Positions 9,199-55,376 of a stretch of 64,000 nucleotides of DNA are shown here, piece after piece. This DNA comes from Gnetum montanum (lineage: Eukaryota; Plantae; Gnetophyta). The notes under the pieces are model-generated. The model was given only the letters and a program-made list of their open reading frames with translations. It did no database searches and was not told the origin of the DNA. A program made the translations under genes and the position numbers. The stretch's first letter is position 1; every line of letters starts with the position of its first letter. The stretch lies in NCBI GenBank assembly GCA_015680685.1, contig MNCI01002984.1, positions 68,221-132,220 on the forward strand. The letters are read 5' to 3'.

Positions 9199-9253
9199 AG
9201 TTCACTTTTGAAAGTTAATGTTGAATAAAAGAGTACTAGACTCTAATATCACT

Positions 9254-24218: not shown

Positions 24219-24270
24219 AGTGATATTAGAGGCTAGTACTCTTACACTCTACAACTTCCAAGAATGAACA

Positions 24271-31300: not shown

Positions 31301-31859
31301 TCTTAGAAACTACACAATGTTTAATACCCATTCCGAGTAATCAATGGCCCAAATGAAACCAGCTTGATAAAGCTTGGTGATTTCATCGCATATAACTAGT
31401 GCAATCTCCAGTTTGATTTTGTGAGCCTTTTGCTTGATTGCCTTGACACATGGATCTAGGATAATGTTGTGTTGTATGAGTCATGGGTCTAGGCCTGGCA
31501 TGTCATCATATGACCATGCAAACACTTTAACATTGTCATTGAGAACTTTTGAGATGTTTTGATGTACCTGTGGATGTAATAGGAAGCTAACTTTCAAGGT
31601 TTTACCTTCACCTCTAGAGGTAGTTATAGGGGTTTCAATAAGGGGATCCTTAGTTACATCCCTAGCCTCTAAGTCTAAGGCTTGAACTAGATGTTCAGGC
31701 TAGTTGAGGGGTGCTTCTAAGAATGCTACGTAAATTTCACAAGAGGATGATTCAAAGTCTACTAACTCTAGGTTCAAGTGTCTTGTAAATCTATCATGGG
31801 GACCTGTCAGGGTCAAGGGAAAATGAAGATCATCGTGCATAGCCATTTTCTAGTTGAAC
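28379..31859 (-). pseudogene. pol of outer Tat: RT, RNase H, additional (archaeal-type) RNase H, integrase; degenerate
   Basis: CIDFRDLNKA, SFMDGFSG, DYIDDI, PVYYLS..VERNCLAL, LHFNSAS (aRH), KFLANWEGPF..HLYLKPYYV. Confidence 0.95.
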
Positions 31860-31954
31860 CTACCACAATAAGCAAATAGACCAAGTCAAGTGATACCTAT
31901 TTAAGATAATAACATGTAATGAATATATGTAAATCAATGATGCGACATAAGATA

Positions 31955-32145
31955 GTTGCCAGTTTAAGGTCTTAGCGGGCCGTCACTATGCAAAATTTGT
32001 AAATTGAAGTTGCTAGTTTAAGGTCTTAGTGGATTGCCACTATGCAAAATTTGTAAATTGAAGTTGCCAGTTTAAGGTCTTAGTGGACCGTAACCATGTA
32101 ACATTGTGAGTTAAAGTTGCCAATTTAAGGTCATAGCGGACCTTC
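31955..32145. repeat. About 53-bp tandem repeat containing GTTGCCAGTTTAAGGTCTTAGCGGAC, 4 copies
   Basis: Direct repeats at about 31955, 32008, 32062, 32117. Confidence 0.88.
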
Positions 32146-32164
32146 ATTGGGTCTAAAATGTAAG

Positions 32165-32474
32165 CTTCTGAAGCTTGCTATGCTACATAGCATAGTAGGC
32201 CTCATGACTTAGAAAACTTGCCGAACTGTTTCTTGCGCATCTAGGATGCTACTGCCAATTTTGCATGTTGTTCTTGAGTAGGCTACCAACTGTTTAGGCT
32301 ACTTTGGTGGGCGAGCAGGATGGTACAGAACCTGTCCATGCTCAAAGTAGAAAATTTGCCAAACTGGTCGACCTGGACTCAGAACGTTCTTTTCCTGATG
32401 AACTGCCATCGTGCTGTGTAGACTGCAAGATCCTGGTGAGGCCAGGTTGATCTCGTATTTTTTAAGGTGTTTCA
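32165..32474 (-). repeat. Truncated 3' LTR of inner Tat element
   Basis: Aligns to 50657-50976 only; starts TGAAACACC on minus after the PPT. Confidence 0.9.
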
Positions 32475-33477
32475 TTGGCCCCTCTTTGTCGACGTCTAGA
32501 GAATGGGCTTGATGGATGTTGGCAAACAATATGAAACACCGCAGCAGGCGAAATGCTAAAGTTGTCGCTTGGTAAGTGCTGGGACGTTGCTTGGCCATGC
32601 TTGAGAGTGTTGCATTGGTTTTGTGGAGGTTAAGGCAGAGAGCAAAGATGATGTTTAGCCGAGTCCCTCGTCGAAGTGCTCTGAGGGGCTCGTTTGCATT
32701 TTCATATTTGGATGGTGCTATTCTTCAACCTCTTGTAGGCAGGTGTCCCCTCCGTAGGATGAGTTATGTTACATCCATGGAGGGTTCTGACTTGCCTATT
32801 ATAGTCTTCCACACGATGAGCTATGTTATGCGGGTGCTAAATTTGCACTCTCAAATAACCATGTTAGTCGAGGCACTCGCTTCGTGACGCTGTAGCCTTT
32901 ACTACTGTAGCGGGATGCGTCTGCGGGTACGAGGTCTTGCTAGATACTGGCATTGTTGTTATTCTTGGGCACTATTGCTGGTGTGAGATGCCCAAAGTAG
33001 GGAGGCCAGCACCAGTCCTGGCAGCGTTGATCACGGGGGAGCTGGTCCCCAAGGCACCGGGGGTGCGGATGCACTGGAATCCCCACCAAAGGAATGCATG
33101 CTCAGTTTAGCTATGAGATCAGCTACCACATAGCTGAACATTGCGTGAGCCGAAACCTTGGTGGGGAGCTGAAGAGCAACAATATTGTGGCTAGGCCATA
33201 ATACTGTCAGCACCTCAGAAGCAGGAATGAGCCCAGGAACTACCATAAGGGTGGTGGGCCGTGGCGACAGTAGGTTTGAAGGGCCTGTATGTCATCATAC
33301 AACGTCTTCGAAGGGTTAGCATGACACCTAGAGTGGTGCTGCATATGCCCTAGACCATGTTCTCCTTATGTCAATAACTACGTCCTAGAGCTACGATGTC
33401 CCACCTACACGTTGGTATCATGCCCTTTCGTTCGATGTGTATCTGGTGGTGTTGCATGTTAAGGGTGCGACGCGAAC

Positions 33478-33722
33478 CCAGTTTAAGGTCTTGGTAGACA
33501 GTGTGCTAGTTCAAGGCCCCAACGGACTGTTGTGTTGGTTTAAGGTCCCAGCAAACCGTACATGCCAGTTTTACGTCGTAGTGGACGTGAAATGCCAGTT
33601 TATAGTCATAGTGGACTAAAAGGCCAGTTTTACGTCGTGGCGGACGTTACTCGGTGCTGCTAGTTTATCATCATTGCAGACACTGCCTGGTGCAACTGCT
33701 AGTTTATCATCGTAGCGGACAG
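33478..33722. repeat. Array of about 25-37-bp units CCAGTTT..GTCGTAGCGGAC downstream of integrase (inner), about 8 copies
   Basis: Directly visible repeats; same motif family as 28199-28345. Confidence 0.85.
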
Positions 33723-33744
33723 TGCTTGTTGTTGCCATTGCACT

Positions 33745-36700
33745 TCAGACATAGTACGGCTTGAGGTACGTGTGGTTCACCAGGTTGGCGAACTCGTTGT
33801 TGTCCATGTCTTCTAGCTTAAAGGCTCCATTCCCAAAGGCTTTAGTGACCATGTAAGGACCTTCCCAGTTGGCTGAGAACTTACTTACGTGCTCATGGAT
33901 GGCCTTAAGGATGAGGTCTCCCTTCTGCACTGGCTGTTGATGTGGGTTTGCACGGTGCTTCTACTGTTGTTTGTTCTGATAATGCTCGATTCGTCTCAGC
34001 GTCTACATGCATTCCTCCTCCACCAAGTCGAGATTGATGGTACGTGATTCGTTGTTCTGACTTTGCTTACAACATCAGACAGGATCATCCGAAGTGAGGG
34101 TACCTGCAACTCAAGAGGCAATACAGCTTCAGATCCGTAAATAAGACTGTAAGGGATCTTACTCGTCATAGTTCTACAAGTCATTCGATAGGCCTAAAGG
34201 ATGTAGAGTATTTTCTCGTGCCACCGCCTCTTGCTATTGCTAAGCATCCACTTTAGTAAGTTGATGATGGACTTATTTGTAGCCTCTGCCTACCCATTCG
34301 CCTACAGATAATAAGGGGAAGAAAATGATTGTTCAATGCCTAGATTGCTACAGAAGGTTTGGGTTTCCATACTGCTGAACTATGGTCCATTGTCGATCAC
34401 AATAGTCATTGGAAGTCCAAACCTAGTTACGATGTTATCGAGGATGAAATGGCAGATTTGCTGAGACGTCGTTTTCATCAGGGGAATAACTTCCACCCAC
34501 TTAGTAAAATACTCTGTGGTAGTGATAATGAAGCTATGCCCTGTAGAGGACTTAGGCGTGATAGGCCCTATGAGGTCTAGTCCCCATCGTTGGAAGGGCC
34601 ACGTAATTTGTGTTGGGTGTAGGTCTGTAGGTGCTATGTGAATTTGCGTATCTCTGGCATATGTCACATGTCTTGACCTTCGATAGGCATTCACACTCCA
34701 TGTAGGGCCAATAGTACCCTAGGCATATGATTTTCACAGCCATAGCCCTGGGTGCTATGTGTCCACCATACAGCCCTTCATGAACCTCATTAACTACATT
34801 TTGTGCTTGCTTACTACCCATGCATGTCAACAATATCCCATCGTAGGATCGTCGGCACAGGACATCATTTCCCATGAGCACGTGTTTTCGAGCACGTTTC
34901 TAGATTGCATCTCTTTGAGCTGATGTCAATTCACTTGGGGATTCGCCATGCTGTAAATAAGCTTTAATGTTATTGTACCACTCCGGGGTGTCGGTAGCGT
35001 CGATAGAGGCCACATGTTCCACCTGAGTGATAGGCTCCGTACATTCTATGATCGTAGTTGGTAGGTTTTCCAAGGAATGCGATGGGATGTTTAATGTGAG
35101 GGTAGCTAAGGGATCTACTATGGTGTTCTCGTTGCGTGGAACGTGTTGCATATTAGTGGTCATGAATTGCTTTAGTAAGATTTTTTCTAGGTAGCAGTAG
35201 GATTGCAGGTGTGTAGCCTTGCAGGCGTAGACTTTGGTGATTTGATTCACGACTAGTTGTGAATTTTCCCAGATCACTAGGTGTTGTAAATGTAGCACAC
35301 GTGCAGTTAAGAGGGCTCTGAGTAGCCCCTTGTACTCTACCACATTGTTGGTGCAAGGGAACGCAAAATGATAGGAGGATGGGTACATTTCCCCAGAGGG
35401 GAATGTGATTGTGGCAGCAGCATTACCTCCTCGTGTGGTTGAGGAGCCGTTGAAGTGTAAGGTTGCCTCAAAATGTGACAGAATGATGGAAACATTGCTA
35501 ACGTATTTGTCTGGGAACTCGGGATCTACGATTTCATGGTCATCGACTGGAGAGGCCACAAGTTGGGTTGCTATGGCTTGGCCCTTTGTCGAAGATTAAC
35601 TTACATAACGTAGGTCGAACTCCGTGATTATTGCTTTCCATCGTGCTATCCTGCTACTTTTGTACAGGTTTTCGATGATAGCCCGGAGTATGTTACTCTT
35701 GCAAATGATGTTGGTTGTGCTATAGAATAGGTAGTGCCGCCACTTTTTTAGCGCAAAGACTAAGGCTAGACAGTTCCTCTCCACCTCATTGTATTTTTCC
35801 TCGTATGCTATCAGTGCATGGCTTAGGTAATAAATCGATATCTCAAAACTGTCATCGCGCTTTTGACATAGTGGTGTGGCTATGGATGTGTCGGAGGTGA
35901 CAAGGTATATGAAGAAAGGCTTGTCCCTTTGCAGCGGGTGCACCGTTGAGAGGTGCGAGAGCTCCTTCTTCAGGTCATCGAAGGCTTTTTGACACTAGGT
36001 TGTCCACTCAAAGTAAACCCCCTTCTTTAGATGTTGCATGAGGTGTAACTTGTCAGTGAACTTTGCTATAAACCTCCGAATGAATTGCACTCTACCCTGT
36101 AAACCACGTAACTCCTTAAGGTTTGTGGGAGGCGCTAGGTTGACAATGGCTTTGACTTTGTCTGGGTCCACCCGTATTCCAGCCTCTGATACTACAAACC
36201 CTAACATGTGTTCAGTCTTGACCCTGAAGACACACTTCTTAGGATTAAGACGTAAATCGTGCCTTTGGTAGCACTTGAAAATGAACTCTAGATCGCGTGG
36301 GTGGTGGGCCGCCTCTTTGGACTTAACCGCTATATCATCCATGTAATCGTTTAACTTTTCTAGGATGTAGTCGCTGAAAATGTACGTCATGGCTCATTGG
36401 TAGGTTGCTCCAGCATTCTTGAGCTCAAAAGGCATTATGGTATAGCAGAAGGTTCCCCATGGAGTCATGAAGTTTATCGACAGCTAGTGCTCTGGGTTGA
36501 TGCGGATTTGGTTGTATCCGGAGAAACCATCCATGAAGGATAGCAAAGCATGACTAGCTGTGGTGTCGATGAGTTGATCGATGCTTGGGAGTGGGAAGTT
36601 GTCTTTTATCATTGCCTTGTTCAAGTCTCGAAAGTCTATACAGATTCGTATCCCTCTTGTTTTCTTCGAAACCACAACGATGTTGGACACCCACTCTAAA

Positions 36701-37218
36701 TAGTCAACTGCACGAATGAAACCTGATCGGTATAACTTAGTCATTTTGTCCCTAATAGCTAGTGTGATTTCTGGCTTAATCTTACATGCCTTTTGCTTGA
36801 CTGCCCTTACGTGTGGGTCTAGAACGATGTTATGCTGAATCAGCTACGGATCTAGACTCGACATGTCATTGTATGACCATGCGAAAACATCGATGTGATC
36901 CTGAAAAGTTTTAACTATGCCCTCGTGTATTTGTATGCCTAGGAGGGAGCTAAGTATTAATGTCTTTACCTCCCTTCTTGACATGGTTACAGGTATCTCG
37001 ACAAGAGGATCCTTGGTTACATCCCCAGCCTCTAAATCTAGGGCATGGACCAGGTGTCTGGGCTAATCTGGAGGTGCTTCTAAGGTTGTTATAGTGTTAA
37101 TCATAATCGATCTCTAGTCAATCATGTCAAGGTTTAACTATCTTGTGAGCTTACCTTACGGCCCTGCTAACATTAGAGGGGTGGAAAGGGCACGACAGGT
37201 TTCCATCTCTTGGTTGAC
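33745..37218 (-). pseudogene. pol of inner Tat: RT, RNase H, aRH, integrase; degenerate
   Basis: DVFAWSY, CIDFRDLNKA, DYMDDI, LHFNGS..CTNNVVEY, HEGLYGGH, WPFQRWGLDLIGP..YFTKWVE..DNGP, KFSANWEGPY. Confidence 0.96.
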
Positions 37219-37895
37219 CTACCATCATAAGATGAAAGCCTAGGTAAGGGTCATCAGAGATTGTGTGAAACGTAAATCTACAAAGCAACACCGAGATGCG
37301 ACTTGCTAAGTAAGGTGATGTAAAGATTGAGAGTTTGCTAGTTTAAGGTCATGGTGGACCGCTAAGGCCTAAGCGTCTAGAATTGTTAAAGATATGTAAA
37401 TCATTGATGTGAAGTGCAAAGTTATGTAACCATTGATATGTGAATGTCAAACTGCTAGTTTAGTGTCATTTTGGACTGCCATATTGCGACATGCAAAATC
37501 TTGATATGCAAAATAATAAAAAGAATGAAACTACAAGTACAAAGGGTATTGAACTGCTAGTGCAGAAATGAAGACATGAAACTTCTAAAAAATATGATAC
37601 CACTTGTGTCGAGGCGTACGAGGTAACTGCTAATGTAAGGACTTAGTTAGCTTGACGTCATTGCAGACTGCGATTGTTATGAGTCGAAATTACTATTTTT
37701 GGATCCTGAGGAGCGTAATCATGCTAGGTTTGTTAGTTTAAGTTCTTTTTGGACCTTTAATAGAAAACAAACATTATTATATTAGTTTTCGAGAAGGCAA
37801 GTAATTGACTTGAAGCATGCCAAGGTTTAAATGCTAATAGTGTTGTGATGTCGTGGCGAGCATGCTACGCTGCACGCTGCACTCCACATTAATCG

Positions 37896-37950
37896 GAGAG
37901 AGAGAGAGAGAAAGTTTTCTCATTTTGCCACTACTGCCATAAATAGGGAT
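37896..37950 (+). promoter_or_regulatory. Putative promoter of the antisense gene: (GA)n tract plus TATA-like CATAAATAGGG
   Basis: GA repeat 37896-37911, TATA-like about 37938-37948, then a candidate first exon ending at donor GTGAGT (38207) and a U-rich intron. Confidence 0.5.
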
Positions 37951-38727
37951 TGAACCCTAGTAATTTCAACATTTTCACCATAAAAGCACAGAATCCTCAT
38001 CGGAGCACTCGGTGATTTCGGAGCACGGAGCAATTGTGTTAATCGATTAGCGAGGTGAATTTCTAAGGAGAAGGTCATAAATCTACAGGTAGGGCCATAG
38101 CTCCTAAAACTCAGTTGGTGCTTGCGAAGGTCGAGGAGGCAAAGAAGACCCTGAGGTGTGGGCCACAAGTGTGCGTTCCGGCATGGGAGAGCACACCGTT
38201 GACTCAGTGAGTTTTCATGTATCCTCTATCCTTTTCTCCTTGCACCTTCTGCCACTTTCTGCTTTGGTTTTGCATCTCATTTGTTTTTCTTTTGTATTTT
38301 CTATGACCGTGTTGTTTTAGCTTTTGTATTGCCATTGCCTCTTTTTCTTTTGGTTGTGGCTATTGTGCAAGGGTCTCGTTGTGATTGCATGCAAGGTTGT
38401 CGTCGCTATCGTGGTTGTCATGACTGCGGGGATGGGGCCCTTTAAGTTGCTTGACCTTGACATGCCGTGACGTAAAACCCTCGGGAGGGTTTGGTTATGT
38501 TTGACGCAGCGCCGCGGCGTGTGTTTTTGTTTGAGCATGTTGTTAGTTATTTTGCTACTACACTAACCTACTTGCGTATTCTTTCTACGCTAGGCTTTCG
38601 CATCTTTGCTACGCTATGGTGAACAAGGGGTTATGTTACGCTATATTCGTATTCTACTAAGCACTGCTATGTTGTGCATGCATTGCATTCAAATTTGATG
38701 TCAACATTTGCTATTTTCATCGTGCAG

Positions 38728-41700
38728 GGTAGGGCCAAGGTCTAGGCTAATCGTTTTGGACCTTGAAGGGGTCCTATGTCATGTGGGCAGATCTATGGAC
38801 AACGTTCCTCCTCCCCTGATACGTGTGGCAGAGTGAGCAGTTTGGTTCAGGGACGAAGCGTGAGACTTCCTACAATTCCTTCTCAACCATTTTAGTCTCA
38901 TGGTTTGGTCCTCTTTAGATAAAGAGTAGGCATCTAGCATAATAGAGGCCATACTGCCAAGGACAAATTGAAGCATTATAAGATACCTTTCCGACGATGC
39001 GACCACAAGCAAGCCAGGAATAGGATCTAACCCACACTCACTAGGGTTGAGGTGTTTAGCCTGGATCTACGATATGCCAGAATACTAGTGTTATCACCTA
39101 TACAACACACTGTATCTTGTGCGCAACATGGCGACATACTTTTAGAATCCACAGGGGACCGTTCATTGCATTGGCGAGTGAGTTTCGCATTTTTACTTTA
39201 CTTGGTTGCACAACATCAGCCATACTTGGCCGAGTGCTGATAGTATGTGCTTATCACTAGGTTCCATATTGACAATGATGGGGTTCATGACCAGCTAGGT
39301 GAGTTGGCCACAACACAACTAGCCCTACGGGAGTTTGCCTCTGCCAAGAGCCTACGGGCGAGGGTGATTGGTCATTGCGAGGAGGGATACCATTCCTACC
39401 TACGTGCGTTTGCCTCCCTCTACAATCATTGTAGGATGAAGGGTTGGCTGGACAAGGAGTGGAGAGAACCTTTCAAGCAGGTCACGCTTGAAGCGGTCCT
39501 AGCGGCTGAACTCCCGCTATTCCCCTCACCGTATAGACCTGGTGGGTTAACAGGCAGGCATCACATGCTCAAGTTTTTTCACAATTTCTCTTTTTTTTTA
39601 TTATGCTAAGTATGTTTCATGATCATTACTGCAGGAGCGAAGAAGCCTCGTGACGTGACGGTGGTAACTGCCAAGAGGCAAGGAGGAAACATTTACTCTA
39701 AATATGGTGAAGTAGTGGTGAGCCAGAGCTAGTGAGAACGAGGGGCTTCGAACCCCTTGCTCAAGAAAATCTGAATGGTTGGACTTATGGATTTGTTCAT
39801 GGCTACAAATTCGGGTGTCCCTGCTGCTGAGATGCTTTCCTTAGTCAACTCCTTCTCTGGGCAGGCGAGCTATTTTCGTACGTACGTGCGGGGTGTGCGG
39901 GTGGTCATTGACATCAATGACCAACTATTTGCAGATTTGTTTGGCATCCCTGCTAATGGTGTCAATGTGATGTCGAAGGACAAGTAGGAGTTGGCCCTTC
40001 AAAAGTAACATATCGAGGAGTGGTTGAGGCTCACCAAGGAGCGAAAGGGGTTCCCTATGGACAAGCTTAGGGAAGGTCCTGCCATGGGGATATACCCAAT
40101 CTTTTGTGCCCATGCATTCCCTCAATTGCTCATCCAAGGGAAGGTCCTGGGGCTTGAGCAGGCTTGGGTAATGCGGGAAGTCATGGAGGAGGGGGCCCAT
40201 TACAACTAGGCTAAATTCCTATGTAGTGGTTTGCAGGCTGAGATTTTGGGACTCCGTGAGCCAACGGAGTCCCACTCTAACATACACTATGCTTTCTACA
40301 TAGGCTATTTAAAGCACTTCACGGAGTTCCTAGTGGTCTAGTAGGATGGAGTCTGGTCCAAGCTAGATCGTGAACAGATTTCTAAGCCATGGATTCAACA
40401 GGTCCTTTGGACTATGCAAGCCTAGGACCCCCTGAAAATGGTGGGGGAGTCATTGTCTATAACAACTAAAGGTCTAGCAGTTCGTAGTGCTTACGACCAA
40501 GACAGTGTAGGGGAGATGTCCCCTACCATAATCGACAATGTGACACAGGGTAAACATCTCATAGCTGAGACCATGCCCATGGAGCTACGAAGAAAGTGAC
40601 CTCCATTAGCCAGGGAAAGCCTTTATGAAGAGGAGGGGCGAAGACTGCGGTTCAAGTTGTGATGAACGCAACCCCCCATTGGTGAGCGCTACATAATATT
40701 TAGTTTACTTTGCTATTACCTGCTATTTTATGCTTCGTTAGGCAGTGCATTGTAGCGTGGCATTTGTTTTGAGTTAACTTGTTTCGATTTGATGTATGTA
40801 TGTCCTTTTGTGGGCAGAAGAAGAAGAAGACAAAGAAGAAGGTGATGAGGAAGTGTCATCCCTCAGGACGAGGGCAACAAATAAAGATGCAAGGGCCCCG
40901 GCTTTGGAAGAAAGGGCCCCAATCAGGAATAATGGAGCTCCTGTCTCCAGGATAGGGACTCTTGTCATTAGGGAGCCTCTTCCTAATGAAGAGGTACCTC
41001 CCCAAAATAAAAAAGACGTCGCGCTCCTAAAAGGAAAGGCATCAGCGCATGAGGTAGGGGCTTTCATGGACTTGGCTGGGCCTTTTACCAAGCCTATGGT
41101 GATCATCTTGCATCGGCAAGAAGAAAGACTGTAGCCGGATGCTAGTGAGTTAGGCTTTGTTTGTGCCTTACCATAGTCCATTTTGGCCATTGCTAACGTG
41201 CTTAGTCATGTAACAGGTGCTACTACTGATGTCTCAGGACTTCCTCTGCCTCATACTGAGTCATGGGCTGAAGTCCTTAACAAGCTTACGTTTGTTCAGG
41301 GACTTGTCAATGACATGATCAAACGCCTTCAGCAGGCAAACCCTCGTGCAGGTAAGTAGGAGTGTTAACTGCCCTTTTGTTGTTACATTGAAATTTTTTA
41401 GTTTGTTGATTATGTTATGCTAACGTGATTACTATGCTTTCTATGCTGAATAGCCTCTTGGCTTAAGTGGGACCCGGCACAACCTATGGAGGTTAGTGTG
41501 GTACCTGCACTCTCACCTAACGTGATTGAGGTGTCTCATCATATGTTTGATGAGGCTTACAAATGTGTCTTGCACTTGGCATGCTCCCTATGGGAGTGTA
41601 GATGTACCAACAAGTACCTGTGGAAACGGGTCCAAAGGGCCGATCAAAGAGAGGCCGAATTGGTCGTCAAGGTGGAGAAGCTCAGGTCAAGAATCAATTT

Positions 41701-42485
41701 CCTCATAAACCGTAACACTGACTCTATCAATTTACAAAGGGCTATGGACGACTATGCCAAGTTTTGGACTGTCGTTCATCAAAATGTGGAGTCCACCCGT
41801 GAAAGAATCGAACAGTAGATGCAGATGAACTTGCTAGCCCAGAAGTGCCAAGATATGAAGGACATTAGCACTAAGGTCTTCGAATGGGGAAAAACCCAGA
41901 GGGATCACAAATATACATACAAGCTAGAAAACAAAACCCATCGAAGATTGTATAAAGACACTGTTGTGGAGGCATTCTCGTACAAAACGTTCATGAAGGC
42001 CATCGGTGCTTCTAAGGCCTATGCCAGGTTTAAAGAGCAAGTAAAGGTCATGGAGTCTCCTGACCTAAGGGTGAACCTTCCTACAGAAGATACTGCAACC
42101 GCCTCCCTTTCTCGAGAACCTATAAAGTGGACGACCTTGTAAAGGAAGAAGGTTGTCACTGCGAATGTTGAGCTTAGTGACAGGCATTGGATGGACATTT
42201 CTATAGAGGAGATTGGGCATCGCCTCAAGCTCGGTCTAGACCAGATACCTCTTGAGACTGACGTAGGCTCTCCTTAGGTTAGTCGCTTTAATGCTATGCT
42301 ATAGCTAGCGTTTATTTGTTACCCTAGCTAACTATAGTTTTGGAATATAGGCCCTCAATGAAGGTGTGAGGCCCATGGAGGGAGGAAATGAAGAGCCGGT
42401 AAGGGGCAACATAGGAGCGGGCGATGCACAAGTAGGTGAAGAGGGGGCAAATGGTGAAGGCGATGCGAACAGAGATAACCCATGA
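38728..42485 (+). pseudogene. Antisense multi-exon accessory gene of inner Tat (FCP1/NIF-like HAD domain, plant-transposon/PMD-like domain, acidic linker, coiled coil); premature stops
   Basis: Exons about 38728-39177, 39261-39541, 39635-40681, 40818-41144 (end uncertain), 41217-41351, 41454-42277, 42351-42485; GT-AG introns of 70-140 nt, in phase, matched in the copy at 51092-54725. Confidence 0.85.
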
Positions 42486-42806
42486 CAGCATGGGACTCCT
42501 CTCTCTCTTTTTCTTTTTTATTAAAAATTTTGAAAATTTTACAAACACTACCAATGGGAGAAAATTTTGAATGAAATGGAAAACTTTAGAAAGGAGACTG
42601 ATTTTGTATTAACTTATGCCTTATGTAAAGTTTTCACGCTCTCGTATGCTAGTTTTAGGCCATTTCGGGCCATTGCTAGTTTTGGGCCATTTTGGGTCGT
42701 TAGTGTAGCATGTTGAAAGGACGGCATATTGACAAGACAAGGAAATGATGAATATGCAAGGATAGCGACTAGGTGGGAGGTCGCAAAGCTGCTATGCTAT
42801 GCGTAG

Positions 42807-45800
42807 CTACCTCTTGACCTTTCGCGGGTTGATCAGGACATAAGGTCGAGGTGTTTCGCCTGGGCCCCTACTCATAACACTGTCCTTTGCTTGCAAGGGA
42901 AATTCACACCATGCGTTTTCGATTTGAGGGTTAGCTCGTTGGACCAATCCCTCCGTTGTATGATTAATGCATGCATGAGCAGGTGCGTCATCTTCAAAGG
43001 TTGTAACTTCTGAACCCTGTTCCATGCCTATGTTGCTAATTGCTTGTGTTACTACCTCGTCGCCATGGATTATCACCTCCTTACCCATGTATGGTAAGTG
43101 CATTTCCTGGTGTATAGGTGAGGAGACAGCCCTAAGTTGTGCTAACCACGATCTTCCCAAGATTAGGTTAAACTCGGGCATTTCTTCAACCATGACGAAT
43201 GTTGCGTCTATGGGGAACTGGTCCCTTGCTACGAAGTTTACATGAACTGTGCCCTTCACCAAGATGCATGCCCCGTTGAAGGACCACAAACACGACATCG
43301 TCGTTGGTTTAATCTGGTTGACCAATCCCAACTTATCTATAATAGGGAAGGAAATGAAATTTGTGGCAGCCCCATCATCGATGTGTATCCTTCAGATCCG
43401 GTCTTGGCTGACCCGAATTGTGATGAAGAGAGGCATTGTAGTCACTTGACCCCCTTCGGGATCTTCCTTAATGGTGTTTGAAACACCACAAAAATTTGGA
43501 CCTTGCACTTTCAGACATGAATCAACCTAAGTCATGATGCTTCCCAGCATAACCGAAATTGGCAAACTTCACAAACAGCATCGAATGGAGTCGAATCAAA
43601 CAAGTAAAAGTTCCCCAAGATCCACTAGTGACTACATCAACATCTGGAAACAAGAAGTGCAAGTTTCAAACTCAAAACACTAAGTTTTGACTAAGTATAC
43701 TTCTTGCACACAAGCCTGCATGCCCAACATGCAGCTCAACATGCAGCAACTTTGGGCCCTAAAAATGAGCCAAAACATGCTAGAATTGAGTGTTTGGACC
43801 CCCTAGAACCTTCACCAAGGTCCCCAGCAGCTCTCAGCCTCCTAAAAATCAAATTTTGGACCCTAAATGATGCATTTTCATGTGTGTATGCTGGGTACAT
43901 TTTGGTGTACGTTGACCAGCGTACGCCACCAAAAATGGCCCAAAACAGGCATCAAAGAGCAATATTTTCACCTGAAATTGACTCCTAGAGGTAAGGCAAT
44001 TGTCAAGCATCGTCCTAGGCTCCCGAAAATGAAGATTCAACCTTGAAATGATGCACTTCCATGACCTATACGCTGAGCATGCATACCCTGCACGCCCAGT
44101 GTGTACCACCAAAAGCGAGGTTGATCAGACGATTCAGCCAACCTGCACGTTGATCTGCACATCCAGCGTGCATGCTCAGTGTGCAACATAGCGTATGCCA
44201 CTTGAAGCCTTCCAAAATAGTATTAGATCAAGTCCAAATGAGTTGAAAATCTATAGGCAGCATTCTCATGATACCAAAGTTCAAATCCAAGGGCCAAGTT
44301 CAAGATTCTCTATTGTAACAGTAATGTTCATTTGTAAAGTTCAATTCTTTTGTATTGGTCAAGTCTGTATGCTGGGTTCACATGCCCAGTGTGTACACGC
44401 TAGCATAGAGCATGTTGTATAGTTGTAATATTCTTTGCACTCGAGCAATGTAGGCACATGTCATCCAACTCAAAATTTTCTCACCAATGGCCACTCATAC
44501 CACTCCAAATCCAAGTTTCACACCCTAAAACCTATAAAAATCCCAATTTCCCACCAAGTAAAGAGGGGGAGAAAACAAAGAAAAAAGGGAAAAAAGAAAG
44601 GGAGAGATAAAAAAATATCACATTTTGGAGATGATTTGGAACACCAACCCTGCATGCTGGACTTCTACCCTGCACGCTGACCATATAGCCTTCACGCTGT
44701 GCCTGCAGTCCAAACCAACATACCATCATCCCTCCACATTCACCAAGGCTCTTCGTCCTCCTTGTGTCAGATCCACAATTGTGTTCAGACCGGTGCACTG
44801 TAATCTTCATTATGCAATAAAATTGCTTCATTTCTGATCAAGATCTATTACAGTTTTCATTCATTCTTACTTACCTCTTTGTTTATATTCCTGCACATTT
44901 ACGTTTTGGTTTACGTTTATTATGTTGTTTACACATAATCCAGCATATGGCACATTAGCATACGTTTAGCGAAATCCTTGTTTGATCCACGTGCGGACCA
45001 CCCAAGGTACTCTACCTTCGTTAGTTCCAGCTCGTCCTCAAGCGAAGGTAGAGTCTTCTGTGCTTGTCTATAGATCTCCCGGTGCTTGTTCATTCTAGCC
45101 TTGTACCGACGATTTCAGACAGTACAGTGTTGCTATTTAAAGTTAATTGAGGTACTGCGGGCACTGTGGGTATAGAGGGGAGTATGACCGAGTGGATCAC
45201 TTTCTCTTTTTTTGGCATGTTTTCGTCGACCGAAATCGCCGTTAACATGTGGACTAGAGCCTCGCAATGAGGTACAGATGTCATGACCAGGTCATACAAG
45301 CTCAACGTAGCATTTTTCTACCTTAGGGCTTGCCCAACCTAGGTGAGGGTGTCTAAGAAGTTTTGGCTACCCGCCTGTTTGACACTTTCCTTCTCCTCGA
45401 TTTGTCCTAGAAGACGAATCTCTCGAGGAGAGACGGCCTCAAACCTAGTTTTGGATCTTTGTCGGCAAGGTGATGTAGGTTGTGTAATCGAGTCAACCTT
45501 CATCTTTGGTGATGAAGGTGTAAATACAAGGGGCGAAGGCGTAGGCTTGGAGATAATTTTGATAGTATTCCCCTTTGACACCTCGCCCACCAAGTAGGCT
45601 TCTCGCCTGGTGGGGCGAGGAGGTTGTTTAATGTTGTTGTACGGGATGGGGGCTATTGAAGATGTTGGTCCCCTGATGATGAATGGAGCTAGAGGTGGTG
45701 ACTGACGAGGTCACGTGGCCTCACCAACAGGTGGTGTAGAAGTAGATGCCCATGGTGGGACTTTCAAGATGAAGGGCAGCTGCGAACTTGGACCAACCAT

Positions 45801-48266
45801 TGGTGGTATTGGTGCACTACGCTGAGGCACACGAATCACAAACAGCTGGAAAGGTGGCATGGAATCATTGTCAATACCGATGGCATTGATTACGTAACCA
45901 GCATTATTGGCATTGAGGGGGTCTATGTAGACATACATAGATTGATTTTCAGGGTGTACTGGGTTACTTTCATCCAGCATCAACTTTCCTAGGTCGATTA
46001 ATCTTTGGATGTCATCCTGTAACAATAGACAATAATCCCTGGTGTGACCACATAGTTGGTGGTAGTCACAAAACCTATCTAGCCTGAAACCCCTAGGAAA
46101 CGGGGACTCATTGGGCAAGGCCAAAGAGGGATTCCTAAGGAGCTCGCAGTAGCATCAATGTCTCATGTTTGCTTCCTCTGACATTTGCTTGTGTTGGATG
46201 TATCCCACTGCCAATAGTTGCTTCATGAGTTCTGAAGGTTTGAGAGGCAATGGGGTGTATTTCGAATGATCTTTACCCTCAAAGTTGGGTTTAGTGTATG
46301 CAGATGTCTCGGGTGTAGGTGCGGCAGGTTGTGATGCTTGGCCTGATTTGGGTGTAGAGTCAGCCGTAGGAATGGATGGTTTCTTATTATTCTTTCTTCT
46401 GCTATTGCTATGTTTGGGCTTGGCCTCAGCTGCCACAGTAGCCACCATGGTTGTTGGGGCCTTACCCTTGTCCTTTTTTGCGAAACTGTTCTTGTAAGTG
46501 ATGTAGGCTAGGTCTTTGCTCGCCTCGACCGTGTCTTGTATGTTTTTCGTCTAAGCGAAAGCTTGGCTAAGTGAGCATGGAGCGAGGTAATACAGTTTGG
46601 ACTTGATGAATTCATTCACCACACCCTTAAAGATGGCTAACAAGTGAGCCTCCAGGATGGGCTCACGGATTTCGTTAAGTGTCGCGCTCCAACGTTGAAT
46701 GAATTTTTGGACTAGTTCTAATGGGTCTTGTTTCACGCCCATTAGCTGATCCAATGTGGTTTTTGGCTTCAAGTTATATTTGAAGCGTGTCACAAGCTGG
46801 GTCAAAAGTTCTTTCAAAGTCAAAATGGATGAACGTGGCAATGTGCAGTACCAATCTAGGGCTTTTTCGACTAGGGACATGGCGAAGACACGAATGATCG
46901 TATGCAGCCACTGTTGTAATAGCAAAGACTCTGACTGGAAAGTGAGGAGATGGGTATTGGGATTCCCTTCCTTGTCATACTTCGTGAAGTGCGGGAGGGA
47001 CATCCCAGGTGGCAATATTAAAGCAGGGATTGCAACGTTGACGGGGTCATCCTGATAGAAGTCCATGACTTGTACTGTATTGGACCCAATAGCTTTGAGG
47101 TGTTTTACTTTCTCAATTAGGGTCTGGATAAGCTAAAATGCTTGGTCTAGACCCAGTGACGTTGTAGATGGCTAAGGGACTGCAGAGGCAACTCCCACAT
47201 GTGGTATGGTGGTGGTGGCAATTTGACCCATCGGGGGTGCCGTTGGGACCACCCTCGCTAAAGGTGTTGTTTGCATTGTCCACCACTTGGTGGGTGGTAT
47301 TGTTGGAGTGATAATAGCGGGTTGAGTCACCAAATAGGTCGTTTGGATTACCGATGGGATAGACCATGGCCCCATGCCAAGATGTACCGTTTGCGGGGTC
47401 GGGTAGGCCTGAGGGTGAACATAGTGAGACATCTACGATGGTTGCAGAATGAACGAAGAAGCGAACGGGGTCCACCACGTGGATGGGCCTGGGCCCATCA
47501 CAGTGGATGAAACATATACATAGATAGGAATTAGTGTAGGAGTTATGTGTGGTTGCAAAGTAGGTACTGTATGGATATGCTGTAGGGTAGCCGTGATAGG
47601 CATGTTGTGCACTGTGGGAGCATGCTGATAAACGGCTTGCAGCTGCATAGTTGCTGCGGGGGCAACCGGGGAATGGGAGTGATGATGCACTGGGAATGTA
47701 GCATGGCTATCCATTGCAATTATGGTTGTAGGCTGTTGAAGCATAGGCATAATGATAAAGGGGCTAGTGATAGATAGCAGGTTGGCCCAGAAGGACTGGG
47801 TAGGCAGGATAGGAATGGGGTTGGCTTGACCTCCCTCGTCAGATTGGGAATCGAGTTCCTCTTGCCTGTCTTGAAAGACATCATCCTGGTTGGATGTTGT
47901 GTCTTATTGCTCCCTAATCCTAGTCAACTAGATTAGTTGATCTAGAAGCCTTTGGTAAGCTTACGTTAAAGGTAAAGAAATGCCCAAGGTAGGAACGAAT
48001 TCCTCCCTGTTGCAGTAAGTGAGCTCAAAGTTACATTTTTCTTCGAGTTCATGTAAATCCAAGGGCATATTAGCCTGCACCTTTGCACAAAGGAAATTGT
48101 AATGCTCGTGTTACTGGGCCAATTCCTTAGGTCCTCGATTTTGGATTCTAAGAGACCAGCATGCTTCCTGCATTGGATTCAGCTGTTGTTCAGCACTAGT
48201 AGTACCTTGGACCACAAAGGGCACCTCCGTGTTGAAGGTGTCCATAGCGGTGGTGGCGGAAGCCAT
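42807..48266 (-). pseudogene. gag-protease of inner Tat, interrupted by a solo LTR
   Basis: P/Q/T/H-rich N-terminus, KYDKEGNPNTHL..VFAMSLVEKALDWY (retrotrans gag), CDYHQLCGHTRDYC, protease IDDGAATN..FNLILGRSWL. Confidence 0.92.
43479..45126 (+). mobile_element. Solo LTR of a related Tat family in opposite orientation, TSD GTGTT
   Basis: TGAAACACC..CAGTACA termini; GTGTT at 43474-43478 and 45127-45131; host gag-PR sequence rejoins across it. Confidence 0.92.
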
Positions 48267-48344
48267 TTCTAAGCAATTGATTATGCAAAAAAATGCAAAA
48301 AGTGCAATAGAACAGAAGGATTGAAAAAAGTGATAAAAGGATGG

Positions 48345-49190
48345 TTTTGTGTCTTACCGGATTCTAGGGGAATCGTCGGGGCGACCAATCTATACCACAG
48401 AAAGCGTAAACAACCACAAAGGGTGTCATGTCTATGCCTATGCGTGATGAGGTACAGAGCACATGCAAGACTACCGTAAGGCAAGTTCAGTTGACAAACG
48501 ATCAAGAAGGCTTTATGTCCCGCAGGATCCCAAAGGGACCATTGAGGTGACTGACCTACATCACACAAGGCGTAAACAACCTCCGAGGGTGTCACATTTT
48601 CACCTACGCTGTCTAGGGTGCAGAACGTGTGCAGGACTTCTGTAAAAAGGAAAAGCAAGTTACATCACCGTCAGAAGGCTTATTGTCTCATAGGGTTCTG
48701 GAGGAACCGTCGAGGTGACCAATCTACACCATACGATGCATAAACAACCATAGATGGGTATCAAGTCTATGCTAATGCAAGCTGAGGTGTGGAAGGCATA
48801 CGAGACTACCATAAGATCCTAGAGGGACCATCGAGGTGACCGGTTTGTACCACACTAGATGGGGTACAGAATGCAGGAAAGACAACCGTAGGATGGGCAA
48901 GCTAGCTAGCAATCAGGTAGGCTTTATGTCTCACAAGATCCCAAAGGGACCGTCGAGGCGATTGATCTGTACCACACAGGATGGGGTTTAGAATGCATGC
49001 AATACAACCATAGAATGAGCTAGTTAAAATGGTGATCAGAGGCCTTGTGTTCCGTAGGGTTCCGGAGGAACTGTCGAGGCGACCGATCTGCACCACATAG
49101 AGTGCAAACAACTGTAAGAGGGTGTCACATTTATGCTTGTGTGTATTAGGGTGTAGAAGGCTCACAGAACTACCATGACATGCAGTAAAG
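48345..49190. repeat. About 6 degenerate tandem units (120-175 bp) in the 5' leader of inner Tat
   Basis: Core GG(A/G)ACCGTCGAGG(C/T)GACC.ATCT..ACCAC recurs about 48370, 48535, 48700, 48825, 48945, 49065; single copy in the outer element at about 59385-59510. Confidence 0.85.
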
Positions 49191-49199
49191 GCACCAAAA

Positions 49200-49218
49200 G
49201 GCCCTCCTTCTAGCACCA
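49200..49218 (-). promoter_or_regulatory. PBS of inner Tat element
   Basis: TGGTGCTAGAAGGAGGGC next to the LTR end; identical core at 59522-59539. Confidence 0.85.
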
Positions 49219-49224
49219 GAAAAT

Positions 49225-50976
49225 TGTAGCGACTGAAAATGTCGACCGCTGGAAGAACGCTGGGGGTCAGCGGACGCGACAGTTCCAACCCTGTATCCGT
49301 GGGAGGGCAGTGCTGGGTGTGTACGAATACAGGGTGCCCTGAACGGTCTGGTCGATTAGGTAGGGACTTATGTCGACATCAATATAGCCTTTTGCAACAT
49401 AAATAATGCGAAATGCGAGATAGTGCTTATGGGTAACTAAAGTAGGAGAGAAACTGTAAAAGTGCAACAGTAATACGAAATAATGCTTAAATATGAACAA
49501 AATAGAAAATAATGCAAAGAAACAAAACAGCAAATGGGGGATAAAGTAGAGTATAGTTAGAAACATGCATTGCTCCAAAGCTACAAACTTGTCTGGTCAG
49601 GATGGATATAATTGGCTGCACAATGTGATAGAGTGCAGAAGTCCCGAGAGCAACCAAGGCACACCAAGAAAAGAAAGAGCTATGCGCTTGGACACGGACT
49701 TCATGTACAAACAATGGGGGGCTCTACCAAGGTGGTAGAACAAAGATGGGGATCTTACACCAGCTAAAAGAGACTTTCTATTTCCAGTGTTAGACAGATA
49801 ACTTTCATTATTACAATGCCAGCCAAAGAGGAAATCTTTGTTTCATAATTTCAAAGTTCCCACTACTTGGAAGCTGTTTGCTCCTAGAAAGATGCGAAAT
49901 CTTTTGAAATTGCCAACTTTACAAATTGTTGACTTTTCTAAATTGCTGGTATTTTTTTAGTAAAACATTCTAGGCCTGTTATATGCTATTTTTCGGGATA
50001 TTTATAGGGCTGAAGGTAAGAAAAAAGGGGCAATTTTAGTGCTACGTGCCACACGCTTGTGTTATCTTACTGCTGCTACTCGAGCCATCTGTGATCGCTG
50101 GAATTACAAGACCATTGCGATGCGAACCTACCATGCAATAACTACAATCCTACCATGCCATAATTATGCCGTCAGTGTCTGGAGACGTGTGCCAATGGTC
50201 TGATTAGGTGGAGTGCATTGATGTCATGCAACCACCTCTTTACCTTGCTATGCTTTGTGACGTAGCATGCTCGGCATAGTGTAGCACCTTGTCACACGTT
50301 CTGCTGTCTGTTACATGCCTGCTACGCTATGCTACACTACGTAGCGTAGAGTAGCATAGCAACTTGCCTTAGTCGTGAGAGTTTTACCGATTTGCAAACC
50401 ATTCTCCCACGATGCAAGTTTTGTGAACTTTGTTGACTTCACCTTTCAAACTACCTTTTGTCTCTTCCATAGGATTGCTACGCCTTGCTGCACCATGTAG
50501 CTTAGCATAGCGTAGTAGTAGACATAGTTTGCCACTTCCTGACGAAAAAGGACATCACTGTAGAACTCGAAATTGGGCAAGGGGAGTGGGTAGTAAAGTC
50601 GTTGTCATGCTACGTTATGTGACATCGCGTAGTGTAGCACTTCATTTCGTCATCATCTTCTGAAGCTTGCTACGCTACATAGTGTAGCATAGTGTAGCAG
50701 GCCTCATGACTTAGAAAACTTGCTGAACTGTTTCTTGCACATCTAGGATGCTACCACCGATTCTACACGATGTTCCTGAGCAGGCTGTCGGCTATTTAGG
50801 CTACTTTGATGGGCAGGCAAGATGGTACAGAACTTGTCCATGCTCAAAGTAGAAATTTTTTTGAATTGGCAGACCTGGACTCAGAACGTTCTTCTCCCGA
50901 TGAACTTCCATTGTGCTGTGTGGACTACAAGATCCTGGTGAGGCCAGGATGACCCTACATTTTTTAGGGTGTTTCA
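49225..50976 (-). repeat. 5' LTR of inner Tat element (about 1.75 kb)
   Basis: TGAAACACC..GCTACA termini on minus; adjacent PBS; TATA CCCTATAAATA about 49999-50009. Confidence 0.92.
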
Positions 50977-51091
50977 CTGGGGACTTAACATTTTGTGCCT
51001 AAGGGAAAATTTTTAAGTGGAGGGTCACACTACACTACATCAGTAATCATCACTTGAACACAGTACTAACATTTGGTGCTTTGTCATGCAG

Positions 51092-54000
51092 GGTCATGTT
51101 GAAACCCGTCTTAATTGTGCTAGAAGTGGTAAGCATCCTATGCTACCTGAGTGAACTCGTGGCCAACATCCCTCCTCCCCATGCATAGGTGGGGCATCAG
51201 GCGATCTAGTTCCAGGAGGATGCTTGGGAGTTCCTAGAGTTCCTCCTTCGCTACTTTAGTGTGATTGTGTGGTCAGACTTGTTAGCTTAAACAACCACTG
51301 TTCTCATTGAAACATTGTTGCTCGGGGTAAACCAGGGCATCTTGAAGTTCATGGCTAACAAGTTGATTAAGGGCAAAGGGGCGAAAGGCTCAAGTCAGTG
51401 CCTGAGGGGCCTAAGATGCTTGAGTTGAATTTGGGACATGCCCGAATTCAAATTCTACCATAAATACAACATGTTATTTGTTGCCTGTCACATGGGCACC
51501 TACTTCCAGAACCCACCTAGGACTGTTTATTGTGCTGACAGGTGAGTCCTATGAAGATGTTTCAAACATGTTGTATTATTTGTCTTGCATGGTCAAAAAT
51601 GCTTAACGTACTTTGCATGTTACCAGGTTTGTGATTGACAAGGATGGTCTTCACGGTAACATGGATACATTGGTGTTGGCCCAAATAGCTTTGTAAGAGT
51701 TCTCCTCTACAGGGAATGTGCGTGGCAGTGTCATAAAACAACTTGGGCTTGATTTCAAAACCTACCCAACCAAGTATGCCAAGTTCTATTTGAAGTGTAA
51801 GGAGCTTCGCTGGTTGGATAGCGAATGGGACAACCATCGACCACTTACCATAGAAGATGTTTTGGTGGAAATTCCACCATTTCGTACACCATTCAAACCT
51901 GGTGTGTTAAGTTATGCATTTTTTTAATATGTGTTCAAGTAATTGACATTGCCTTTTCCTTCTTCTTTTTTTTTTGCTAATTTTATTGTTGATTGTTGCA
52001 GTAGCAAGCGAATCCCAAGAGGTTACAGTGATTACCTCTAGATGCGAGAAACCAACCTCTTCTTCAAGTATAGGGAGGTGGACAAGACTTAGCGTTGGCT
52101 TTGCAATGGGGTCCCAGCCATCTTTTTTCACAACATTTAGGAGGCTAGGCTCATGGATTTATTTTTGGCAATAAATCCAAGTGTCCCAGCCGCAGAAATG
52201 CTTTCCCTAGCTAATTCCTTTTCCAAAAAGGCTGACCGCTTTGGTACACAAGCTCACAATGTGCGAGTGGTGTTTGAAATTAATGACAAAATTTTTGTGG
52301 ATCTTTTGTGTTCCTTCTGATGGTCTACTTGTAAGGGAAAAGTTTAGCAAAGATGCAAACCATCAAGGGGATATCAAGGAATGGCTAGGGACAAGCAAGA
52401 ACTGAAAGGGGATTTATATTCATAAGGTCAAGCTAGTGGTGGCCCAAATGGTTTACCCCATCTTCTGGGCCCATGCCTTCCCCAAGCTACTCTTCCAAGG
52501 GAAGATCCTTGGAGTAGAGTAGGCTTGGACCATGAGGGAGGTCATGGAGAAAGGGACCCATTATAATTGGGCCAAGTACCTTTTTGAAGGCTTGCGTGCT
52601 GAAATGGTTAAGCTTCGTGAGAAGCTTAATGCATGTTTCAACGTTCACTACACCTTCTTCATAGCTTGCCTATGATGGTTTGTGAAATTCCTGGTGGTTC
52701 ATGAAAATGGCACCTGTGTACAGCAGGATCGTAACCAGATTTCCAAACCATGGATTTTCCAGGTGTTCCGCACCACCCGATCCCAAGACCCCCCCAAAAG
52801 CTATTGGGGAATCTCTTTCGATAACAATGAGGGATTGGGTGGCATAATCCTTTTGTGCCTGGGATAGCATTGGAGAGGTGCCTCCCATCAACATAGGTAA
52901 TGTGTTAAGGCAGGAATGTCTCATTGCAGAGATGGTGAAAACTAGGTTGCAACAGAAAAAATCTTGTCCAGTGGAAGAACCTCCCCATACTACTCAAGAA
53001 AGAGGGAGGAAGCTATGAATCAAGGTTCGCAAGGTGCAACCCATAGTTGGTAAGTATGCTTAACTGTTTGATTAGCGTAGCACAACGTAGCACCCATTTT
53101 GTATTGGAGTATCCTACTTATTTTGAACGTGTTTATCAGAAGAAGGAGAAGAAGAAGAGGTTTTGGCCCCTGAAGTAGGAGTGCCTACTATAGAGGAAGA
53201 AGAGGCCCCGATGGTAGAGGAGGAGGCCCCTGTCATAGAGGAAGAGGCCCCTACTACCATGATCCTTTTGCAAAGTGTGCCCCAGTACCTGAGGGGCATA
53301 TGACTATTGAGGATGCCACCATACTTTTGAGTCATCTAGAAGGAAAAGAACTACAATTCGATGTTGGTGAGTTTGATTGCTTACTTGACAATGTGTGGAT
53401 GGGTGATCCCCCTGCTATCACCCCTAAGGTTTGCTGGGTAGGAGCTTTGCACTATCATTTATATTATTTTTTAGTTTCATTTCCCTCCTCTTCCTCATTG
53501 CTAACTTGTTTTATTTTGTAGTGAACATCACTGTTGAGGCCCCTAATCCTTCTTCCTCGATCCACCTTCGACCATGGACAGGGACCCTCGATAAATTCAC
53601 CTTTATAGAGGGGGTGGTTGATGACATGATTGATCACCTAAGGCAGATCGATCCTGAGATAGGTATGTTGAGATCACTACATTAGGCTCTCTAAGTTGTT
53701 GCATTTTTTTTCTATGGTACTATGACTAATGCTCTCCCACGTGTGATTGAAAGCTTCTCATCTCAAGTGGGATCCTAGGTAGGCCATCGAGGTTGACATA
53801 GTGCTTGAACTTCCTCCAAAGGTAGTCAAGGTACCTCGTCATATATACAAGGAAATGAGTAAATGTGCATTATACTCGGCATGCTCCTTGTGGGAGTGTA
53901 GGTGTGTCAATGAGGATCTTTGGAAGAGGATAAAAAAACTTGAAAAAGAGAAGGCTAATCAAGCCGCTGAGTTGGAGGACCTCCAATCCATAAATGAATT

Positions 54001-54725: not shown

Positions 54726-54889
54726 CGTGGCAGCGAAAGATTTTTATTTTTGTTTTTTGATTTAAATTTTTGCAAACATTATTGTATGGACTGAAATTTG
54801 ATGAAGAACATAATGTGAAACAATTCATTTCATTTTGGTTAATCTGTTATTATTATTTTTAATGTGTTTGGGCCCCTTGAGGGCCTCTT

Positions 54890-55105: not shown

Positions 55106-55169
55106 GGTAGATAATTAATGCATGCACAACCCTGATGTAAACGGTGTACATAGTGTAAATAGTAGACAC

Positions 55170-55310: not shown

Positions 55311-55376
55311 ATTAAGATGGAAGGAGATAAAAAATGTTAAAACCAAGCCGTTATGGAATTGAATTAGAGGTAATCT

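Follow-up and report, generated by a model that had tools for sequence, protein, structure and literature searches.

Two nested minus-strand Ty3/gypsy retrotransposons, found in a stretch of 64,000 nucleotides (nt) of plant-like DNA from Gnetum montanum (contig MNCI01002984.1; hereafter the window), each carry a multi-exon gene between protease (PR) and reverse transcriptase (RT), on the strand opposite to gag and pol. The inner element, copy B, lies within the outer one, copy A. We consider it likely that the gene is an accessory protein-coding gene of a Tat/Ogre-like Ty3/gypsy family, antisense to the element and located wholly inside its PR-RT region. Sequence comparison supports the view that the gene is a component of the element rather than a chance insert: a second element, diverged by about 30%, carries the same gene at the corresponding site, with orientation and exon-intron layout unchanged, and the gene bears a clear signature of purifying selection. 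An earlier note on this DNA, made from copy B, had already taken the gene to be carried by the element, and the homologue in copy A bears this out.

Structure, conservation and predicted product of the antisense gene

In copy B, the gene occupies positions 38728-42277 of the plus strand, opposite to the gag-pol strand, and its six coding exons are interrupted by five GT-AG introns, which are short and U-rich (Table 1). The spliced frame was followed by coordinate arithmetic across the introns, and the exons were read and searched singly. From 38728 to 42277, the frame comprises 1021 codons; all five junctions are in frame, and 21 premature in-frame stops but no frameshifts were counted. The plus-strand coding blocks and the GT-AG introns that the earlier note had proposed were confirmed, in site and frame, for introns 1-5, and its estimate of a product of about 1000 amino acids (aa) agrees with the number of codons. 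Its claim of one frame broken only by point stops holds up to position 42277 and fails beyond it.

The frame ends with a TAG at 42275-42277, which aligns with a TAG at 54571-54573 in copy A, and codon periodicity is lost after ~42290. Because of this conserved in-frame stop and the missing periodicity, the segment 42278-42485 is regarded as not coding, that is, as 3' untranslated region (UTR) at most. The intron at 42278-42350 and the coding exon at 42351-42485 of the earlier note were consequently given up, and in place of its seven or more exons, six coding exons are supported. Directly after the shared stop, the hexamer GTTAGT is present in both copies (to 42283 in B and 54579 in A); it may represent the conserved donor of a 3'-UTR intron.

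The donors of introns 1-5 in copy B are consensus-like (GTGAGT, GTGGGT, GTGAGC, GTGAGT and GTAAGT), and the acceptors are pyrimidine-rich and end in AG. A CTAAC-type branch motif is found 20-40 nt ahead of the acceptor in several introns. The introns contain 36-45% T and 31-43% GC, compared with 19-27% T and 46-54% GC in the exons, and the T-richness is confined to the plus strand. With their GT-AG ends, U-richness and branch motif, the five predicted introns fit plant U2-type spliceosomal introns.

Copy A contains collinear plus-strand blocks homologous to every exon of copy B, with 35-63% aa identity and expectation (E) values down to 1e-29 in tblastn, at a nucleotide identity of merely ~50-65% over the gene. 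The position between PR and RT, the orientation and the exon-intron layout are the same in both copies. For four of the five introns (1, 2, 3 and 5), the GT and AG of one copy align with those of the other; the conservation of junctions in other copies, by which the earlier note had proposed to judge the gene, is thus evident for these introns and not for intron 4. The lengths of the four introns differ between the copies by numbers that are not multiples of three (Table 1), yet the homologous frame resumes each time. This implies that frame-breaking insertions and deletions (indels) were tolerated exactly at the modelled introns. At intron 1, the shift in frame across the intron equals its length modulo 3 in each copy; at intron 2, the frame compensation in copy A rests on an alignment of 13 aa, after which copy A has a frameshift. 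The acceptor CAG/G of exon 1 (the slash marks the splice junction) is conserved in B and A, and the exon gave tblastn matches to copy A at 51084-51506.

Identity between A and B, determined over 629 gapless codons, was 61, 70 and 44% at the first, second and third codon position, respectively. In an unselected sliding-window scan of A/B mismatches, the most variable position was found at 1 mod 3 in exon 1, at 0 mod 3 in exons 2-3 and at 1 mod 3 in exons 4-6. These wobble phases match the frames required by each exon and, therefore, support the exon model independently. The wobble phase is constant over 38690-39180; it is present over 40805-41000 and weak beyond that within exon 4, and codon periodicity is absent in introns 3-5. 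Nei-Gojobori analysis (NG86) in the inferred frame revealed a proportion of non-synonymous differences (pN) of 0.32 and of synonymous differences (pS) of 0.79, the latter being saturated. This dN/dS-type comparison between copies, proposed as a check in the earlier note, gave a result far from neutral. In the other two frames, pN/pS was 0.87 and 1.10, and stops were present in 67 and 84 codon pairs, respectively, as opposed to 9 in the inferred frame. Judged by these comparisons, the predicted gene evolved under protein-level purifying selection on the plus-strand frame. Its conservation between A and B is comparable to that of the weaker parts of gag and of the region upstream of gag.

Both copies of the gene are dead, copy B through point stops only and copy A through stops and several frameshifts. 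Nine stops of copy A lie in aligned blocks; five of them are one step away from the sense codon of copy B, and all five steps are C>T or G>A, which fits post-insertion decay of methylated repeats. Since both copies are pseudogenes, the selection signal dates from the active lineages ancestral to A and B.

For Pfam analysis, 20 exon pieces of 32-149 aa from B and A were searched, those from B at E up to 1 and those from A mostly at E up to 10. None of the 20 pieces matched a family above noise, with PMD (PF10536) and Transposase_28 (PF04195) both missing; the pieces are short and a distant relation is possible. PDB sequence searches with two exon pieces and a word-based search with a 70-aa central piece gave no match, and a profile of exon 6, run with hmmsearch against 1.84 billion representatives, gave one match, repeat protein P0001, which was judged spurious. 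One piece submitted to the ESM Atlas returned a weak lead, PF20167 (plant-transposon protein domain), with a score of 0.86, which is below the counting level, and a second piece returned nothing. A phosphatase of the FCP1/NIF-type HAD kind was considered for exon 1 and rejected, as the aligned site reads D-L-E-G-V in B and E-V-V-S-I in A and not DxDx(T/V). Pieces of exons 1 and 2 had no match in Pfam (including NIF) or PDB, exon 1 having been searched in stop-broken pieces. AlphaFold2 models of exon 6 pieces consisted of long helices of low confidence, with a mean predicted local distance difference test score (pLDDT) of 45 and 54, and the heptad pattern of exon 6 exceeded that of shuffled sequences in one stretch of 28 residues, in copy B only (3/200). 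We infer an orphan product of ~1000 aa, which contains an acidic linker and is predicted to be helical at its C-terminus.

The carrier elements and their PR-RT spacer

In both copies, gag and protease are followed by a long gap and then by RT, RNase H (RH), a second RNase H and integrase (INT). The order of Pfam domains in copy B is RVT_1, RT_RNaseH (35599-35994), RVT_3 (34903-35595), Integrase_H2C2 and rve. Angiosperm Tat lineages of the Ogre/Retand type are recognised by an additional, archaeal-type RNase H (aRH) lying between RH and INT (PMC6317226); by their order of RT_RNaseH, RVT_3 and integrase, both elements belong to the Tat clade, Ogre/Retand type. In gag and pol, the copies share 66-70% nucleotide identity and 47-87% protein identity and, hence, represent two related families. 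A protein search with the aRH piece gave no match at E ≤ 1e-10, the protease open reading frame (ORF) of copy B had no Pfam match at E ≤ 0.01, and metagenome scans with alignments of exon 6 and of the protease gave no match. No third copy was found within the 64-kb window.

The PR-RT spacer of copy B measures 5.75 kb, from the end of the PR ORF (42810) to the start of the RT ORF (37062); the earlier note had recognised the spacer and put it at 5.6 kb. In copy A, the gap comprises 50977-55400 plus 31700-32158 beyond the inserted copy B. On the minus strand of copy B, a phase-0 donor AAG/GTCAAG is present at 42818, just before the PR stop, and an acceptor TTAG/CCC at the start of the RT ORF, 37063. 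The homologous sites of copy A are the donor TGG/GTTAGG at 55400 and an acceptor at 31700, again in phase 0. Splicing from candidate donor to candidate acceptor would bring PR and RT into one reading frame in each copy. From these sites we infer that the PR-RT spacer is probably a sense-strand intron of the Ogre kind, expanded and hosting the antisense gene.

With such an intron, spliced sense RNA would encode a Gag-PR-Pol fusion, and unspliced RNA would be the template of reverse transcription. The antisense gene would be copied along with the element because the unspliced sense RNA is the template, and its introns would persist through reverse transcription because they lie on the strand opposite to the element RNA, where they are not introns. 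The survival of the introns had been explained in this way in the earlier note, and their orientation agrees with it. In intact copies, RNA polymerase II would transcribe the gene from a promoter of its own, located towards the RT end of the spacer, and the host would splice the transcript; maize Grande gene23 is a known example of a gene expressed from an antisense promoter within the element (PMC7264820). The product might assist the element or regulate it, for instance in the nucleus, if its role is like that of other Tat extra-ORF proteins; with neither homologue nor domain found, analogy is the sole basis of this proposed function. For the full proposal, namely that a gag-PR/pol intron grown to ~6 kb houses a complete, independently transcribed multi-intron antisense gene and that the element needs or benefits from the orphan protein of ~1000 aa, we regard the chances as evenly balanced.

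The conserved acceptor of exon 1 lies in codon phase 2 and leaves one base of a split codon at the start of the exon, which requires at least one further exon upstream. In the candidate 5' region of copy B, a TATA-like ATAAATA is found at 37939, a sole ATG at 38183, a donor TCA/GTGAGT at 38207 and a T-rich candidate intron of 521 nt extending to 38727. The ATG at 38183 was discarded as start codon, being one base out of phase with exon 1. Copy A has an in-frame ATG at 51096, the second codon of exon 1; the upstream exon may, therefore, be untranslated. A counterpart of B 37760-38727 is not present in copy A. One deletion spanning the B/A junction would account for both the truncated 3' long terminal repeat (LTR) of B and the missing 5' region of A, which suggests that a single later event removed the rest of the B 3' LTR together with the promoter region and first exon of A.

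The 3' LTR of copy B begins after a purine-rich tract and retains just its first ~330 bp. A 340-bp repeat (32163-32495 / 50650-50995) had been considered as the full LTR of copy B and was dropped, since the inner end of the B 5' LTR (49240-49397) resembles the U5 end of both LTRs of copy A.

The antisense gene is flanked on either side, close to the two ends of the PR-RT spacer, by direct repeats of a ~33-nt motif with the core TGCTAGTTTAAGGTCAT..GGACC; in copy A, the motif forms a tandem array with a period of ~54 nt. The repeats might serve as a regulatory array or assist in splicing the long sense intron, or they could be a scar left when the gene was acquired. Upstream of gag, a region on the sense (minus) strand (B 47119-48302, A 58041-59214) shows 32-50% aa identity between A and B and may be an Ogre-like ORF1; the one piece of it that was scanned, 47436-47903, had no Pfam match. 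Features of the Ogre lineage are an additional sense ORF ahead of gag, in many cases with a plant mobile domain, and a primer-binding site complementary to tRNA-Arg. The leader of copy B (48350-49130) contains tandem repeats with a period of ~120-170 nt, which are related to a segment of copy A (59388-59502) lying just internal to its 5' LTR. An inverted repeat pair, 7367-9057 / 61870-63743, is ~72% identical and adjoins the 5' LTR of copy A, and further repeats (3553-5090, 9052-10330 and 23007-24417) occur, in direct as well as inverted orientation, in the left, AT-rich portion of the window. The repeat families flanking copy A are probably older elements that received the copy A insertion.

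Table 1. Coordinates of the antisense gene, its carrier elements and associated features in the window.
Feature	Position	Strand	Remarks
Exon 1, copy B	38728-39177	+	450 nt; codon start coordinate = 2 mod 3; 6 premature stops
Intron 1	39178-39260	+	83 nt in B, 85 nt in A; GTGAGT...AG aligned in both
Exon 2	39261-39541	+	281 nt; wholly open in B; 38% aa identity to A 51619-51912, E = 1e-20
Intron 2	39542-39634	+	93 nt in B, 100 nt in A; CTG/GTG.GT and TGCAG/ conserved
Exon 3	39635-40681	+	1047 nt; best conserved, up to 63% aa identity with A; 12 stops in B
Intron 3	40682-40817	+	136 nt in B, 90 nt in A; TTG/GT.AG. and CAG/AAGAAG conserved; in frame in both
Exon 4	40818-41144	+	327 nt; acidic, fast-evolving linker; in-frame TAG at 41132
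Intron 4 (tentative)	41145-41216	+	72 nt; GTGAGT...CTAAC...AG; in frame in B
Exon 5	41217-41351	+	135 nt; open in B
Intron 5	41352-41453	+	102 nt in B, 91 nt in A; AG/GTA.GT and AG/ conserved; in frame in both
Exon 6	41454-42277	+	824 nt; C-terminal region; 2 premature stops; ends at TAG conserved in A
Proposed intron 6 and last exon	42278-42485	+	past the conserved TAG; no codon periodicity
Candidate promoter and 5' end, copy B	37939-38727	+	putative, read from sequence
Homologue of the gene, copy A	51092-54573	+	stops and several frameshifts; in-frame ATG 51096
Exons, copy A	51092-51541, 51627-51901, 52002-53049, 53140-~53428, ~53522-53662, 53754-54573	+	from alignment to B
Candidate sense-strand (Ogre-type) intron, copy B	37063-42818	-	encloses the whole antisense gene; putative, from sequence
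~33-nt motif	B 37333-37760, 42644-42703; A 31922-32158, 55011-55081	direct orientation	from sequence
Copy A, whole element	24438-61869	-	LTRs 24438-26752 and 59566-61869, mutually 84% identical
Copy B, whole element	32159-50976	-	in the PR-RT spacer of copy A, ~115 nt upstream of A exon 1
LTRs, copy B	5' LTR ~49240-50976; 3' LTR only 32159-32489	-	5' LTR ~1.7 kb; from sequence comparison
Protease ORF, copy B	42810-43391	-	end of gag-PR; 65% aa identity to A 55586-55957; D(D/S)G motif
RT, RNase H, aRH and integrase, copy B	33748-37062	-	Pfam domains

Weighing of alternative explanations

Several points weigh against an accessory gene of the element. The antisense transcript and its splicing are predicted from genomic DNA, just as the sense-strand intron is read from sequence alone, and the comparison is limited to two copies, both of them broken. 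The codon blocks were picked via tblastn, which biases the identities by codon position somewhat, although the unselected sliding-window scan agrees with them. Intron 4 is unconfirmed in copy A, where its counterpart, 53429-53521, is not in frame and lies in the least conserved part of the gene. At the 5' end, the only upstream ATG of copy B is out of phase and the corresponding region is missing in copy A, and the exon-by-exon searches found neither a homologue nor a domain.

One alternative is that the gene is passive cargo, i.e., an intron-containing host gene or a piece of another transposon that was inserted backwards into the PR-RT spacer of the common ancestor of A and B and has been slowly decaying since. 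This would be in keeping with both copies being full of stops and with the lack of a homologue that would link the gene to known retrotransposon proteins, and the direct arrays of the 33-nt motif flanking the gene could be insertion scars. Capture as DNA is the likely origin of the gene in any case, since intron-bearing genes cannot arise by sense-strand transduction. Neutral decay, however, predicts pN ~ pS and no periodicity, whereas a pN of 0.32 against a saturated pS of 0.79 and position identities of 61/70/44% were observed. Splice sites, intron phases and the stop codon were kept at ~45% nucleotide divergence, indels are concentrated in the introns and frame-compensated there, and the stops resemble late C>T decay. 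Passive cargo is, therefore, considered unlikely.

Constraint of a different kind would be expected if the region gave rise to a non-coding regulatory antisense transcript, acting in control by double-stranded or small interfering RNA, or if it contained splicing enhancers of the long sense intron, with the open frame being incidental. Retrotransposon antisense RNAs with regulatory roles are known (PMC7264820), and because the gene overlaps the probable sense intron, the constraint could stem from the sense strand. RNA constraint does not, however, produce a three-base periodicity in which the second codon position is the most conserved, nor does it explain synonymous saturation alongside moderate non-synonymous change, the restoration of the frame across introns of unequal length or the shared stop codon. 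We regard this explanation as very improbable.

Next to no weight is given to an artefact of strand or chance, in which the true coding strand would be minus or the ORFs would arise by chance in a GC-richer repeat: minus-strand frames do yield weak A/B protein matches at the same places, and in exon 3 of copy B the number of stops in one minus-strand frame is about as low as in the plus frame, but the plus-frame matches are far stronger (for one and the same segment, E = 2e-23 vs 3e-14), conservation is highest at the second codon position of the plus strand, the GT-AG sites, T-rich tracts and branch motifs are all oriented on the plus strand, and only plus-strand splicing restores the frames.

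Relation to known retrotransposon genes and significance

PMC6317226 and PMC4408406, citing Neumann 2003 and Steinbauerova 2008, describe Ogre as having gag-PR and RT-RH-INT in two ORFs with a short intron between them, which was shown experimentally to be spliced from part of the transcripts; the gap between the ORFs averages 274 bp (PMC6317226). The Gnetum elements are like Ogre in that gag-PR is apart from RT-RH-aRH-INT, in the second RNase H between RH and INT, in the candidate GT/AG sites joining the ORFs, in their large size and in the conservation of a sense-strand region ahead of gag. Unlike in Ogre, the gap measures 5.75 kb, ~20-fold the mean of 274 bp, and a six-exon gene is housed in it on the opposite strand; splicing is here predicted.

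Known antisense extra ORFs of Tat/Retand elements, situated between pol and the 3' LTR, include maize Grande gene23, rice RIRE2, Silene Retand ORF4 and the TRP28 ORFs (PMC7264820, PMC11963269). Grande gene23 has its own internal promoter and encodes a nuclear protein (PMC7264820), and most antisense extra ORFs of Tat/Retand elements are without similarity to host proteins (PMC7264820, PMC11963269). The gene described here is comparable to these ORFs as an element-borne antisense gene conserved across families. It differs from them, which are located downstream of integrase, are described as plain ORFs and often have a Transposase_28 domain, by lying between PR and RT, by having at least five introns and by its ~1000 codons; no match to Transposase_28 or PMD was found in the exon pieces. 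With the PMD-CC/Tr28-CC proteins of Tat lineages III-VI (PMC4408406), the predicted product shares the character of a long accessory protein, predicted to be helical and possibly with a coiled-coil C-terminus. Unlike these, it has no Pfam match to PMD or Tr28 on the exon pieces, and its gene is neither at the 3' end (antisense) nor at the 5' end (sense) of the element.

Complex-retrovirus antisense genes, HTLV-1 HBZ and HTLV-2 APH-2, are cited in PMC11963269. The likeness is that of a protein gene on the opposite strand of a retroelement, which can be spliced, HBZ and APH-2 being regulatory. HBZ and APH-2 differ from the present gene in starting from the 3' LTR, in being small with one intron and in belonging to animal retroviruses, and there is no sequence relation.

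For plant extra ORFs, the positions described are ahead of gag or in the interval from pol to the 3' LTR, and the domain content is PMD, Transposase_28 or none (PMC7264820, PMC4408406, PMC6317226, PMC11963269). No extra ORF between PR and RT and no multi-exon extra ORF was found in these four papers, the main survey, Steinbauerova 2011, being outside the comparison; this agrees with the earlier note, whose author knew of no described case with seven or more exons in this position. According to the cited literature, the known kind is that of Tat/Ogre accessory genes, and what appears to be new is the location between PR and RT and the multi-exon antisense structure. The origin and role of extra genes are considered open in PMC7264820, which calls for a search for antisense and spliced transcripts.

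If the full proposal of an expanded sense intron housing an independently transcribed antisense gene is true, the Gnetum elements would represent a hitherto undescribed organisation of LTR retrotransposons, in which a gene is nested within an intron, and the orphan proteins would constitute a new family among the accessory proteins of retrotransposons. With six conserved exons on the antisense strand between PR and RT, such a gene would mean that elements can pass through reverse transcription many times and still retain an intron-rich gene of host style. The gene would also give the element a reason to keep unspliced genomic RNA and a giant sense intron. For annotation, it would imply that genes of this kind are masked as repeats and that ORF-based surveys would overlook them. 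The orphan protein family, new in itself, would be a candidate for a role in retrotransposition or in evasion of silencing.

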